A program made the translations under genes and the position numbers. The notes beneath the pieces were generated by a model that did no database searches, was not told where the DNA came from, and saw only the letters and a list, made by a program, of their open reading frames with translations. Below are positions 3,333-49,256 of a DNA stretch of 64,000 nucleotides, piece by piece. Position 1 is the stretch's first letter. The number at the start of each line of letters is the position of its first letter. Source of the stretch: Rebecca billardiae RCC1528 (taxonomy: Eukaryota; Protista; Haptophyta); NCBI GenBank assembly GCA_965240325.2, contig OZ251225.1, forward strand, positions 1,550,001 through 1,614,000. Reading direction: 5' to 3'.

Positions 3333-5136
3333 GACCGCGTTCCGCGGTCCTTCCGTAGAACCAACGTAGTTACTAGTTAGTTAGGGGCCCGCGGTGCACC
3401 CTCCGTCGGCTGCTGTCTCAGTCTGGTCAACATGGCGGGCCGATGAGGACTGTCGCCGCGGGCCGCGCGAAGAAGTACGGACCCCAGCCTGCGCTCACGG
3501 CGCTGCGCGGCCGCGCACCGAGAGGCGAGACCGAGCGCGGAGCTCGGGGTGGAACGAGGCGAGCGGCGGGTCGCGCCTGCCGCCGCGCGTGCGCGCCTGC
3601 TCCACCGCGCCACCGTGCTCGCCCGCCGCCTCCTCCGCCGCGTCGGCCTCGAAGCCACGGCGGCGGCCAGCCAGCCTCCGACCGAGGCGGAGCCCGTGCG
3701 TGCTCACTCACCCGGCGCGGTGGCGCCCTCGAGTCGACGGCCGTCTACTCCACAGCTGGCTGCTCGAGCTGCTGCACGGGGCGTCGCGACGAGGGCGCCG
3801 CGCGCGCCCAGCGCGTCCGTCGCCGCGTCGCGCAGCGCGTCGAGCTCGGCGCCGCGCTTCGCCAGCTCGGCGCCCAGCGCCTCCGTGCGCACTCGTGCTC
3901 ATTCGATTGTCGTCATCGCGCTCGTCGGCTCCGTGGCGAGCCCGCGGGGCGGACGAGCGGACTACTGCGCGCCGCAGCAGGAGCAGCGCGCGGCGCGCAG
4001 CGCTCCGCGCGCAGCAGGGCCGTCTCCTCATCCACCGAGTGCACGGCCTGCGCGGCGGCGACGCCGCGACGGCGGCGCGCGCCGCCGCGGGGGGACGCAC
4101 GCGCTGCGGGCCGAGATGAGTCCGGCCGCCGAGCCGCGGTGGCGGCGTCGGCGTGCGCGCCGGGCGAGGTGGGCGAGCTCACGCGGCCCGGGCTCAGCAC
4201 GCCCGTGCACAGCGCCGGCCGCGGTGGCGAGCGCGCACCGCTCGGCCGCGGTGGCAACCGGCTGAGCGGTTGATGTTTGAAGCCGCGAGGTCAGTGACGT
4301 CTCCGATGACTCGGCCATGATTGTGGTCCTCCTTCGCCCACGGGTGCTTTGTCGACCATCCGCTGGAGGCGCGCCAACGTCGGTACGCACAGCGCCTGCT
4401 TGAGCGTCGTGATGTGCATCAGCTCGAGCCGGCCGAAGATGGGCCCGCCGACGGCGATGATCATGATGTGCGCGCTTGCCGCTTGGGCACCCGTCCAGCG
4501 TCCTCGTCGCGAGACGCTGGCGGACGGGTAACCCGTTTTTCTTTCATTATGGCAAAGGAGGTTCATCCATCGAGGCAGGCGGGTAACTTGGTTTAACCAG
4601 CGCTATTCAAAACAATCCCTTCATTATGACACAGGAGGTTCATCCATCGAGGCAGACGGGTAACTTGGTTGGACAAGCGCTATTGAAAAGAATCTCTTAT
4701 TTTAATATGACGAGGCGGTTCATCCATCGAGGCAGGCGGGTAACGTATTTGAACAAGCACTATTCAAAAGAATCTGGCCTCATAGCTGTTTTCGACCCAA
4801 AACAATCAAACGTCGCTCGGCAAACTCGTACTTCAGCATACAAGAGGGGTAGGAATACTCACTTGTTTCACCCCCGGGGTATCTGATCCCACGTCCGTCC
4901 ATCGACATACGGCGAATTGGCGGGCGCGCTTATTTCGTCAATCGCGTCTTGCGGATAGACAGCAATGTACGGTACGTACCCCTCGAAAAAGCGAAAATTC
5001 ACCCTCCAACAGCCCTCATTCCTCAAAATCGTCCCCCGTCCCCTTTTCTTTGATCAAAATAAGATCTTTTTGACAACGTAGTGAGGGCCCCCGGCGGGGC
5101 TTACCACGCTACGCGCTCCGCCCTGCACCGCGGGCC
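3333..5136 (-). mobile_element. Non-autonomous TIR element, copy 1 (AT-flanked; PIF/Harbinger-ISL2EU-like)
   Basis: Both ends (GGCCCGCGGTGCAGGGCGG.. and ..CCGCGGAACGCGGTC) are shared with 19167-20778 and 25408-27162; AT dinucleotide on each side. Confidence 0.75.
4540..4775. repeat. Minisatellite, ~3 units of ~79 bp inside element copy 1
   Basis: GGTTCATCCATCGAGGCAG core recurs at ~4560, ~4638 and ~4717 with related intervening sequence. Confidence 0.8.
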
Positions 5137-44883: not shown

Positions 44884-47700
44884 ATGGGCTTGGTCGAGCG
44901 GCGCAAGACGCGCCGAAGGCCAGCGTTGAGCCGCGCCTCATGGCTGGCGGTGGTGTGGGTGGCGCTCATTGGGCCCGAGCCCGCATCTGCCCAGCTCACT
45001 GTCCTCGAAGGGCCGCCCGAATTGGTCGGCAGCACATTCGAGGCGGTCAACTATGAGTTTGCGCCGCAGACGTTCGACGTGCGCGGGCGACTCCTGCGCG
45101 TGGAGCGGTCCGACTGGGATATGTCGGAATGCCCACCCACCTACGTGGGCGCAGGCGAGCCTGCTGGCAGCGTCATCCTGGACGTCCACCCGCTGGGGCG
45201 GTGCTCGTTAAGGGATGTTTCGTTGGCTGTGCGCGCGGTGAACGCTGTCGCGTATCTCACCTATTCCATGGACATCGCCCACCATTTCGCGCCGGCGCCC
45301 GGGCGGTTGCAGCCGCACTACGCGGAGGCGCCGCCACAGGCGCGCTACGGCCCCACGGTCGACGTGACGCAGGGAGACATGGCGTCGTTTGAGAAGGCCA
45401 CGCGCGACCCCGAGCATGGCATCGTCGTGCGCGTGCGGCCGACGCCCTCGCTGTGGGAGGAGTGCTTCGCATCGCCGTGGTACCTGGTGGTACAGGTCGT
45501 GCTCACGCTGCAAGCGTGCGCGTGCGTCGAGCTCGCCGCCATGCGCATCGAGGCCTTCTGCCGCCGCGCCGCCGGGCCGTACGGCCGGTTGCCGCGCGTG
45601 TGGCTCTGCCTCGAGCTGGCGCTCAACCTGCTGCGCGCCGCGTACTACGCGGTCGACCCGGAGGGCGGGCGGGGCGTCTTCAGCTTCGGCGTGGGCCTGC
45701 TTCTGCGCTCGGGCACGTTCGCGCTCGGCTCGGTTGGGACCGTCATCTTCGTCGGTGCGCGCCGCGCGCGCGCCGCGCGGCCGTGCCCCCCCCCCCCCCG
45801 GCGCCGCGTGCCCGCTGGCGTGGCGCCGAGCGAGCGGAGGCGAGGGGTTCGCCGCGCCCAGCCGGCGCTGACCACGCGTCGCGCGCCCGTGCTTCACCCG
45901 CCGCCCCCCGGCGTGCCGCGCAGTGCACTTCGCGCAAGCCGCGGACTCCGTCTTCCACCCGAAGACCACGAGCGCGCGGCGACATAACGCGCGCGCGGCG
46001 GTGATTGCCTTCACCGTCTTTGCGCTGCTGCTGGACTTGTGCACGTCGCTGCCGTTCATCTGGCAGCGCGCGCTGGTCGTGCCGGCGTTGGACCTCTTCA
46101 TCCTGAAGGCGGCGTACACGTACGCCGTCACGCCGATCACACTCGTCTGCATCGCCTACACCGCCGCGTGGCGCGTGAGCCTCGCGCTGCGCCACCTGCC
46201 GAGCACGCGGCTGCGCGAGCTGATCGCTCGCGTGAAGGCGACGGCGCGGCTGACAGTCTTGCTGATGCTGTACGCGCTGGCCTCGCCGGTGGCGGCATGG
46301 CACCCGTACCGCTCGCTGCCGCTGATGTTCGTCGGCGGCACGGTGGGGCACGCGCTCAGCTACGTGCAGATCCTCGCCTTCCACCCGACCGGCACGCGCG
46401 TCAGGCAGGGCCCGCTTCGCTACCTGGCGCTGCGCGCGTGCGCGCTGCTCGCGCCGCTCGCACACGGCGTGCACCGCGCCCTCGGCCGAACCAGGCGGGC
46501 CTTGGTGGCGCCGATGGAAGGCGCAGCCGTGGCCCTGCGCCCGTGGCGCCGCGACGACGGGCAGCACTTCGACGATGCGCGCGAGCTGCCCGCCGTCGCC
46601 ACGGCCGCCGGGAACGACGATGGCGACGCGGCCGGCTCGTCGCGGTCAGGTCCGCTCCCGCCGAGGCTGCTGCTCGGAGTGTCGCTTGCCTTCTTGCAGG
46701 AGTTCGTGGCGATGTACGTGCCGGACGAGAGCACGCCGAGCTACGACATCGCGCCCAAGGTGGTCGCGCTGCTCGGCGGCGCGGACGTCTCGATCGCCGA
46801 GCGCTTCCAGCACTCCGCCACCACGGACGGCACGCCCGTCGTCGGCCGCGCCACGGTGTTTGTGTCGCATGCGCACGCGTGCTCGTTTGCGCGGATGGTG
46901 GACGCGCTGCGGCTGTACCTCGAGATCTACAAGCTCGACCCGCGCTGCACGTTCTTCTGGGTGGACCGCTTCTGCATGCGACTGCCCTCGCAGGCCGCCG
47001 AGGTCCTGCACATCGGCGCGCTCGAGCAGCAGATCGGCCACGTGGTGATGGTGCTCGGTGCGCGCGCGTGCGCGCGCCCGGCAGCGCCGCGTCCTTTTTT
47101 TTGCGCGCGCGGCGCGAGGGCAGTTCTGCTAGCTCTGCGCCGCGCAGCTCAGCCGCCCCGCGCCCGCCGACCATCCGTGCGCGCGCGGCGCGTGCAGACC
47201 CGTGGGACGCGCCCGTCTGCCTCACGCGCGCGTGGTGCCTCTGGGAGGTCGTCCACTCGCTGCAGCCGGACGCACTGTTTCAGATCACGCTCCCTGAGAG
47301 CGAGAGGCGGCGGCTGATCGAGGCGCTCAACACCGACCGCGCGCGCACGCACGAGATCCTGACCTCGTTCGACGTGCAGCTGGCAGGGCTGCCGAGCGCG
47401 GTGGACCGCGACGCGCTCTTCACGTCGATCGTGCAGCACTACCTCGCCTACCAGGCCTCGCGCCCCCGCGGCATGGCCAAGCACGTGCTGCCGCCCAAAC
47501 CGCCCGTGCTCCGTGTGGAGGCTGGCGTGTTGCCACGGGTGGCTGCCGCGGCGGACACGTCGTTGGGCAGAGGAGCGCACGTAATCGGCGGCGGGCCCCG
47601 GTTCAGCGTCGACCTTGGCCCCGCGGTCGAGCACTTCAACGCGATGACGCGCGAGGCGATGCTGTGCGCGCTCGCGTCCTTCTCCTGGCACGTGTCGTAG
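44884..47700 (+). CDS. PA-domain / 7-TM / HET-TIR-like membrane protein; introns 45755-45923 and 47058-47197
   Basis: Three ORFs join in frame through GT-AG introns; signal-like WLAVVWVALIG; PA-like LGRCSL..AVRAVNAVAYL; seven hydrophobic segments; FVSHA..FFWVDRFC..PWD.PV.LTRAWCLWE. Confidence 0.75.

Positions 47701-47759: not shown

Positions 47760-49256
<1,497 letters not shown>

Follow-up and report, generated by a model that had tools for sequence, protein, structure and literature searches.

Does a single gene of the haptophyte Rebecca billardiae RCC1528 encode a membrane receptor that carries its own effector domain? The question is raised by a locus at positions 44884-47700 on the forward strand of a 64,000-nucleotide stretch of contig OZ251225.1 (GenBank assembly GCA_965240325.2, positions 1,550,001 to 1,614,000), hereafter called the window. 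An initial annotation, made from the sequence, had read this locus as a spliced gene for a seven-transmembrane (7TM) receptor resembling G protein-coupled receptors (GPCRs), with a PA-like domain outside the cell and a HET/TIR-like domain as its cytoplasmic tail. In this study, we found that the PA-7TM-TIR/HET-like architecture is very probably correct, and we lean slightly towards the overall reading of a single-chain PA-7TM receptor with a TIR-type enzymatic output. No paper describing a PA-7TM-TIR/HET design was found in the literature searched, in agreement with the initial annotation, which had not recognised the architecture as characterised. The design is unusual and, within that literature, undescribed, and it is assembled from known kinds of parts.

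From the DNA and its translation, the locus is one gene of three exons and 835 codons (Table 1). Neither intron length is divisible by three, so the reading frames join only if both introns are spliced. When compared with intronless paralogues (alignments A1 and A2), exons 1 and 2, and likewise exons 2 and 3, lie in neighbouring columns, and nothing but the residue of the split codon separates them. Several paralogues in the same genome have all parts in one open reading frame (ORF) of 1,044-1,140 residues (e.g. L061:1669-4818 and L064:1763-4894). These intronless paralogues run on without a break across the intron-2 site (profile position 131/132), a site at which many paralogues are split as well. 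Furthermore, the 850-residue protein P0164, a transcript-derived ORF of a homologue from MMETSP, is contiguous over both intron sites; its residues 7-462 match the PA-7TM profile and its residues 500-849 the tail profile. The shorter P0039, from the same cluster, has 33-38% identity to the window exons. Considering the intronless paralogues and the single-ORF transcript of the homologue, separate genes are unlikely, and PA domain, 7TM core and tail form a single-gene architecture as far as can be read from these sequences. Both introns share a GTGCGCGC donor and GCAG acceptor context, and each holds a homopolymer run, of C in intron 1 (window 45770-45800) and of T in intron 2 (47085-47095). 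Paralogue L067 (G000:C8:3243500-3250000, locus residues ~3444-4643) has a 40-codon in-frame insert (GARAGT...RGSS) exactly at the intron-2 site, which is probably an intron whose length chances to preserve the frame.

For the extracellular part and the membrane core, residues 1-465 of paralogue L007 were modelled with AlphaFold2 from an alignment of 18 paralogues and the two window pieces (A2), through which the model was also mapped onto the window. In the model, which has a mean predicted local distance difference test (pLDDT) score of 86.8, a mixed alpha/beta ectodomain is followed by seven long helices and a helix 8. Foldseek matched the ectodomain at probability 1.00 to PA domains from ZNRF3, RNF43, VSR1 and aminopeptidases of bacteria, with E between 1.3e-3 and 1e-2 and a TM-score of 0.55-0.61 on the target. 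At the sequence level, the Pfam PA model (PF02225) gave no match on window exon 1 and reached 20.3 and 19.9 bits on members of the family in Diacronema lutheri, against a cut-off of 23.9. A PA fold for the ectodomain is supported by the paralogue model. The helix bundle resembled class A GPCRs and designed GPCR-like folds (Z 16-18.4, root-mean-square deviation (rmsd) 3.2-4.0 over 211-254 residues), which is above the level of about Z 13 at which the tool advises caution for generic helical bundles, and the model likewise supports a GPCR-like seven-helix fold for the core. No Pfam 7tm family matched the window pieces or four intronless paralogues. The signal peptide, called by eye from the translation, belongs to an N-terminal leader that aligns with the hydrophobic leaders of paralogues; together with the basic loops after TM1 and TM7 it is compatible, again by eye, with an N-out, C-in topology. 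The PA-like region and the seven hydrophobic helices of the initial annotation are thus borne out by the paralogue model, as its spliced one-gene architecture is by the intronless paralogues and the homologue transcript, and the motifs that it quoted (FVSHA, WVD, VMVL joined to DPW, and RAWCLWE) were all located in the window.

As a lead only, a language-model atlas places the PA-7TM module of L007 (L007:1933-3327:-) next to stand-alone proteins of 460-600 residues from Endomyxa and Zoopagomycota, and in one atlas cluster near the module 10% of the members have a Pfam PA domain. Possibly the PA-7TM module predates its fusion to the tail and is more widespread than the fused form. Word-index protein searches with the tail of an intronless paralogue and with the PA-7TM module returned nothing among 8,000 scored candidates, a result that was probably swamped by Ala/Arg-rich words and is not read as absence.

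The tail is a C-terminal domain of about 310 residues, which was modelled on the compact paralogue L006 (256 residues, 35-42% identity to the window pieces; mean pLDDT 89.8). The model begins with a three-helix lead-in, followed by strand A with FVSH, helix A, strand B ending in W-x-D, helix B and strand C with VVVVL. From there the chain continues through a DPW loop, a helix with R-x-W-x-L-x-E, strand D and a long helical extension ending in FN..R.A...A...SW. The conserved Glu lies on the helix after strand C (helix 142-151, Glu 147 in the model). Conservation was counted over 199 domain copies in 164 proteins. The Glu of R-x-W-C-x-x-E is kept in 98% (167 of 171 copies), and the Arg, Trp and Cys of the same motif in 98%, 97% and 91%; both the W and the D of W-x-D are kept in 94%, the Trp of DPW in 94%, and the Ser and His of FVSH in 90% and 87%. 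From the sequences, this near-invariant pattern looks like that of an active site.

The best structural matches of the tail model are nearly all TIR domains. With Foldseek, where E started at 0.13, TIRs recurred among the best rows, interspersed with unrelated folds; AbTir was found at probability 0.89, then SARM1, ThsB, MAL and plant TIRs. A VIA-align search over 48,161 representative chains gave 17 chains with Z of at least 5, nearly all of them TIR, ThsB or nucleoside 2-deoxyribosyltransferase, the last having a fold related to TIR. In a second look with VIA-align, AbTir scored Z 7.1 (rmsd 3.4, 113 of 134 residues), SARM1 Z 6.7, and RUN1 and RPP1 Z 6.2-6.4; 55 chains had Z of at least 5, and among the matches listed down to Z 5 all were TIR or deoxyribosyltransferase. 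Z being only moderate, the fold call for the tail rests on the uniformity of this list and on the motifs rather than on the score. By these models, the core of the tail has a TIR-superfamily fold, that is, a flavodoxin-like parallel sheet with alternating helices.

In the family the motifs come in the order FVSHA(W), W-x-D-x-F-x-x-x-Q-H and R-x-W-C-L-x-E. The HET consensus has a strand-A block, a W-I-D..C-I-N-Q block and an R-G-W-T-L-Q-E block, in that order, and the HET likeness of the family is judged against this consensus. On the TIR side, the W-C-L-x-E, carried by the helix that follows strand C, is similar to the motif in which plant TIRs have their catalytic Glu; this Glu is E642 in SARM1 and E100 in RUN1. 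In a PDB search with the family profile the bacterial TIR 3h16 ranked third, at a non-significant E of 1.2. In its alignment FISHAW..VWYDDFSLRPGD stands opposite FVSHA..WLDLFSLRQHD, so that both the F-[IV]-S-H-A of strand A and the W-x-D at the end of strand B fall in the register that the fold predicts. By the order of secondary-structure elements and the motifs, the family Glu may correspond to the TIR catalytic Glu. The tail is TIR-like by fold and HET-like by motif pattern.

Several results weigh against reading the locus as a receptor with a TIR-type enzyme. Pfam and NCBIfam were blank on the three window exon pieces, as Pfam was on the four intronless paralogues, and none of Pfam HET (PF06985), TIR (PF01582) and TIR_2 (PF13676) rose above its cut-off on any piece or paralogue. 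HET gave no match at E of 10 or lower on the window pieces and the four intronless paralogues. The best HET score on any member was 11.8 bits (P0014, profile positions 51-73, the W-x-D..Q block), against a gathering cut-off of 22.5 bits. Over the whole genome in six frames, HET reached at best 17.6 bits, at places outside the family, and matched no family locus; the same kind of search with TIR_2 found 24 places, 10 of them above the cut-off and lying in ORFs of 900-1,900 residues, and none of the 24 is a family locus. An hhalign comparison of a 27-sequence family alignment with six of the genome's own TIR_2 domains gave a probability of 0.2%, and PDB sequence searches with the family profiles gave nothing significant. 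As to the models, they are of paralogues 30-42% identical to the window protein, the Z range of 6-7 is flagged by the tool as common for any model, and the assignment of the catalytic Glu follows secondary-structure order and motif similarity rather than a residue-level superposition. Transcript evidence for the locus itself was sought, and its sole database protein, P0052, is an unspliced ORF call. In addition, the way in which HET kills cells is unknown (PMC10890737). Since no curated hidden Markov model (HMM) exceeded its cut-off and the hhalign comparison was null, the tail is filed as TIR/HET-like and not as a proven member of either family. Of the HET/TIR assignment in the initial annotation, the TIR-like fold and the conserved Glu have held up, and formal membership by Pfam or hhalign has not.

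The mechanism proposed for the tail is drawn from what is known of the two domains: HET, a domain of cell death, is a remote relative of TIR, and several TIRs hydrolyse NAD (PMC10890737); several TIRs also make signalling nucleotides. The receptor would be type-I-oriented, a cleaved signal peptide placing the PA-type ligand-binding domain outside the cell or in the lumen, and the GPCR-shaped 7TM bundle would cross the membrane, with helix 8 and a flexible linker leading to the cytoplasmic tail. The tail core would belong to a branch of the TIR superfamily shared with the fungal HET death domain and be flanked by family-specific helices. When a ligand binds to the PA domain, or when the helix bundle changes, the tail domains would gather and, as in TIR enzymes, form an active site centred on the conserved Glu, to cleave NAD+ or a related nucleotide. 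The resulting signal, or the depletion of NAD+, could serve defence, self/non-self recognition or regulated cell death, and the output would be direct, without a heterotrimeric G protein. A G-alpha HMM gave only partial matches to the Ras-like core over the genome, with one place reaching 53 bits by summing neighbouring matches. We hold the enzymatic mechanism itself tentatively, at slightly less than even chances; by analogy, NADase signalling and a role of the receptor in immunity or allorecognition are plausible.

The alternative that survives best is that the tail is a non-catalytic TIR-like interaction module, so that the receptor would recruit partners, such as soluble proteins combining the tail domain with TPRs, by homotypic contacts, as the TIRs of animal TLR and IL-1R recruit adaptors. 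The structural scores leave room for this, as adaptor-type TIRs (MyD88, MAL, TRAM, TRIF and IL-18R-beta, Z 4.5-6.4) come near the enzyme TIRs, and thousands of soluble TPR proteins with the tail domain would be available as potential partners. However, the best structural matches are the NAD-cleaving TIRs AbTir and SARM1, and the near-invariant Glu, Arg, Trp, Cys and His resemble an active site, not a surface patch. We regard an adaptor-type tail as unlikely. A less probable alternative is an endomembrane sorting or quality-control factor, in which the PA domain would bind lumenal cargo and core and tail would do housekeeping work unrelated to immunity. The matches of the ectodomain to VSR1 and to ZNRF3/RNF43 agree with such a role, and the atlas neighbours hint, as a lead, at an older PA-7TM module with a function of its own. 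However, the 40-50 diverged paralogues in the genome suit a diversifying receptor family better than a housekeeping one, and the superfamily of the tail is known for defence and death signalling; we judge a sorting role quite improbable. That the gene model is wrong, the fusion being a reading artefact of separate genes or of a decaying copy, as the unspliced P0052 and an in-frame TGA in one paralogue might suggest, is highly improbable, given three open exons with every conserved residue intact, splice junctions that restore the family sequence exactly, and the same order of parts in one ORF in the intronless paralogues and the homologue transcript.

The slightly favoured reading, a PA-7TM receptor with a TIR-type enzyme as its tail, can be set beside several known systems. 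Like fungal HET (PF06985), the family apparently has three motif blocks in the same order (an S-H/Y-x-W strand, W-x-D followed by Q, and R-x-W-x-L-x-E), and the domain would be an effector end on a recognition protein. In contrast to fungal HET, the domain is C-terminal on a 7TM receptor or stands before TPR arrays, instead of belonging to fungal NLR, lectin or other HET architectures, and it has family-specific helical extensions on both sides. The TIR NADases AbTir, SARM1, RUN1/RPP1/RPS4, ThsB and SPARTA are the best structural matches of the tail (Z 5-7.1). Unlike them, the tail has a longer DPWxxP loop ahead of the Glu helix, about 60 extra residues before the core and 100 after it.

Among receptors, Toll-like and IL-1 receptors and the membrane TIRs of the haptophyte Gephyrocapsa huxleyi share the plan of a binding domain outside, a membrane span, and a TIR-type domain inside. 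A 2025 study reports that virus infection of G. huxleyi induces, at an early stage, TIR genes whose products have several membrane helices or an extracellular region (PMC12489294). Unlike the present family, these are canonical Pfam TIRs, found by HHsuite at a probability of at least 50%; the example given has one helix and an LRR/EGF-like ectodomain, and a PA domain and a GPCR-shaped seven-helix core are not among the features described (PMC12489294). GPCR-bigrams of oomycetes and other protists also join an N-terminal 7TM GPCR-like part to a C-terminal catalytic domain and can bypass G proteins (PMC6033456, PMC5784254). Unlike our family, they are without a PA ectodomain, and their accessory domains are PIPK, INPP, adenylyl cyclase, phosphodiesterase and TKL kinase, TIR/HET not being among them (PMC6033456). 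The PA-TM-RING ligases ZNRF3/RNF43 and plant VSR1 have a PA fold directly before the membrane, as a module for ligand or cargo, and differ in that they have a single membrane helix and end in a RING or a sorting tail; the sequence similarity of our family to PA lies at or below the Pfam cut-off.

Within its own genome, the locus belongs to a large family. When the exons were searched one by one against the 72-Mb assembly of the window, exon 1 matched at 55 places (E down to 3e-56), exon 2 at 70 (E down to 4e-54) and exon 3 at 37, with a best E of about 1e-56 across the three. At about 46 of the 55 exon-1-type places there is another match to the family within about 3 kb on the same strand, either to the C-terminal domain or at least to the membrane part of exon 2. 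A survey of paralogues thus points to roughly 45 full-length copies, mostly dispersed with a few close pairs, and in the exon searches they are diverged, at 25-46% identity. One exon-1-type paralogue (G000:C14:659982-660833) has an in-frame TGA and no tail-domain match nearby, and is possibly a decaying copy. The closest named homologues are those of Diacronema lutheri, which are 33-43% identical to the family in this genome. Two of these PA-7TM-tail members, P0013 (KAG8471001.1) and P0163 (KAG8471002.1), lie on one 3.04-Mb contig; their locus tags, KFE25_009422 and KFE25_009423, follow each other directly, which points to a tandem pair. UniRef names KAG8471001.1, and KAG8471002.1 as well, heterokaryon incompatibility domain-containing; Pfam gives them only a sub-threshold PA and no HET.

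The tail domain reaches far beyond these receptors. A profile search over 1.84 billion cluster representatives found 6,359 relatives at E of 1e-3 or lower, 3,629 at 1e-10 or lower, and 202 at 1e-30 or lower, from MMETSP transcriptomes, EukProt (Paulinella micropora), JGI metagenomes and NCBI (Diacronema lutheri). Among the best 150 relatives PA-7TM proteins are a minority, and most are soluble with the domain near the N-terminus. In 32 of the 52 relatives scanned with Pfam, TPR_12, TPR_10 or NPHP3-type TPR arrays were present, and no Pfam family covered the tail domain itself in any of the 52. Judged by these sequence matches, the domain is widespread in protists, usually ahead of TPR arrays. 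In this respect the soluble relatives, and only they, loosely resemble the TNP proteins (TIR-NB-ARC-TPR) of plants and green algae (PMC9806590), with a TIR-like head followed by TPR arrays; unlike in TNP proteins, the 25 most frequent families of the 52 relatives do not include NB-ARC, and Pfam does not recognise the head as a TIR. In the language-model atlas, as a lead only, the tail domain adjoins unnamed clusters of chlorophytes, diatoms and haptophytes. A broader proposal is that, next to canonical TIR and fungal HET, the FVSHA(W)..WxD..RxWCLxE domain makes up a third large branch of their superfamily, uncurated in Pfam, and acts across protists as an NAD+- or nucleotide-cleaving death and immune effector that haptophyte-type algae have wired directly to a diversified family of PA-7TM surface receptors. 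Such a protein would be a GPCR-shaped pattern-recognition receptor with a TIR-type enzyme, in place of a G protein, as its output. This proposal is possible, if doubtful.

The positions of all features are collected in Table 1. Genuine TIRs and the FVSHA..WxD..WCLxE family coexist in this genome, and 2 kb separate one weak TIR_2 match (C10:352362-352568) from a fragment of the family (C10:349514-350384). Long ORFs on the antisense strand or in other frames between 44000 and 47700 were rejected as genes; such ORFs are expected from coding DNA of 70% GC, and none has family support. About 170 bp past the stop codon starts a palindrome of 1.28 kb (window 47869-49148), the arms of which enclose long (TA)n arrays. 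It may be a hairpin-type element or an assembly artefact.

Table 1. Coordinates of the receptor gene, its predicted parts and other features (window positions unless stated otherwise; TM, transmembrane helix)
Feature	Position	Strand	Description or basis
Exon 1	44884-45754	+	sequence, translation
Intron 1	45755-45923	+	169 nt, phase 1, GTGCGC...GCAG, inside TM3
Exon 2	45924-47057	+	sequence, translation
Intron 2	47058-47197	+	140 nt, phase 1, GTGCGC...GCAG, between strand C and DPW
Exon 3	47198-47700	+	including stop codon TAG
Start codon and predicted signal peptide	44884-44991	+	basic stretch, hydrophobic WLAVVWVALIG, cleavage-type site between ASA and Q
PA-like ectodomain	44992-45477	+	conserved core CPPxY...G.IV....C.....A....A; alignment A2, paralogue model
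TM1	45478-45570	+	L007 model via A2
TM2	45589-45654	+	L007 model via A2
TM3	45685-45946	+	interrupted by intron 1 (first part 45685-45754)
TM4	45977-46066	+	L007 model via A2
TM5	46073-46186	+	L007 model via A2
TM6	46202-46294	+	L007 model via A2
TM7	46304-46378	+	L007 model via A2
Helix 8	46412-46468	+	L007 model via A2
Predicted cytoplasmic linker	46469-46666	+	acidic, Gly/Ala-rich, poorly conserved; length differs between paralogues
C-terminal domain, first part	46667-47057	+	LLLGVS..FL.EF lead-in, strand A FVSHA, helix A, strand B FFWVD, helix B, strand C VVMVL
C-terminal domain, second part	47198-47700	+	DPW, LTRAWCLWE, strand D, helical extension, terminal FN..R.A...AL..FSW, stop
FVSHA	46859-46873	+	His codon 46868-46870
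WVD	46958-46966	+	end of strand B
VMVL joined to DPW	across intron 2	+	sequence
RAWCLWE	47227-47247	+	Glu codon 47245-47247
Palindrome, outer arms	47869-48096 and 48921-49148		228 nt, 100% complementary
Palindrome, inner arms	48090-48251 and 48772-48933		99% complementary
Canonical TIR_2 examples	C13:293189-293515; C5:1949398-1950210; C34:1015527-1015853		genome G000

In summary, the locus very probably encodes a PA-7TM receptor with a TIR/HET-like tail. The tail domain, with its 6,359 relatives among cluster representatives, is without a model in the Pfam copy used here, and defining it would allow the annotation of many protist proteins and could help to explain how the related fungal HET domain kills cells. 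If true, the reading would join GPCR-type sensing, PA-domain ligand binding and TIR-type nucleotide signalling, which are usually studied apart. How marine microalgae sense viruses, bacteria and non-self cells is poorly known, and recent work points to TIR genes in virus-infected and resistant Gephyrocapsa (PMC12489294). About 45 seven-helix receptors with TIR/HET-like effectors of their own would, if the reading is true, be concrete candidates for the study of algal immunity.

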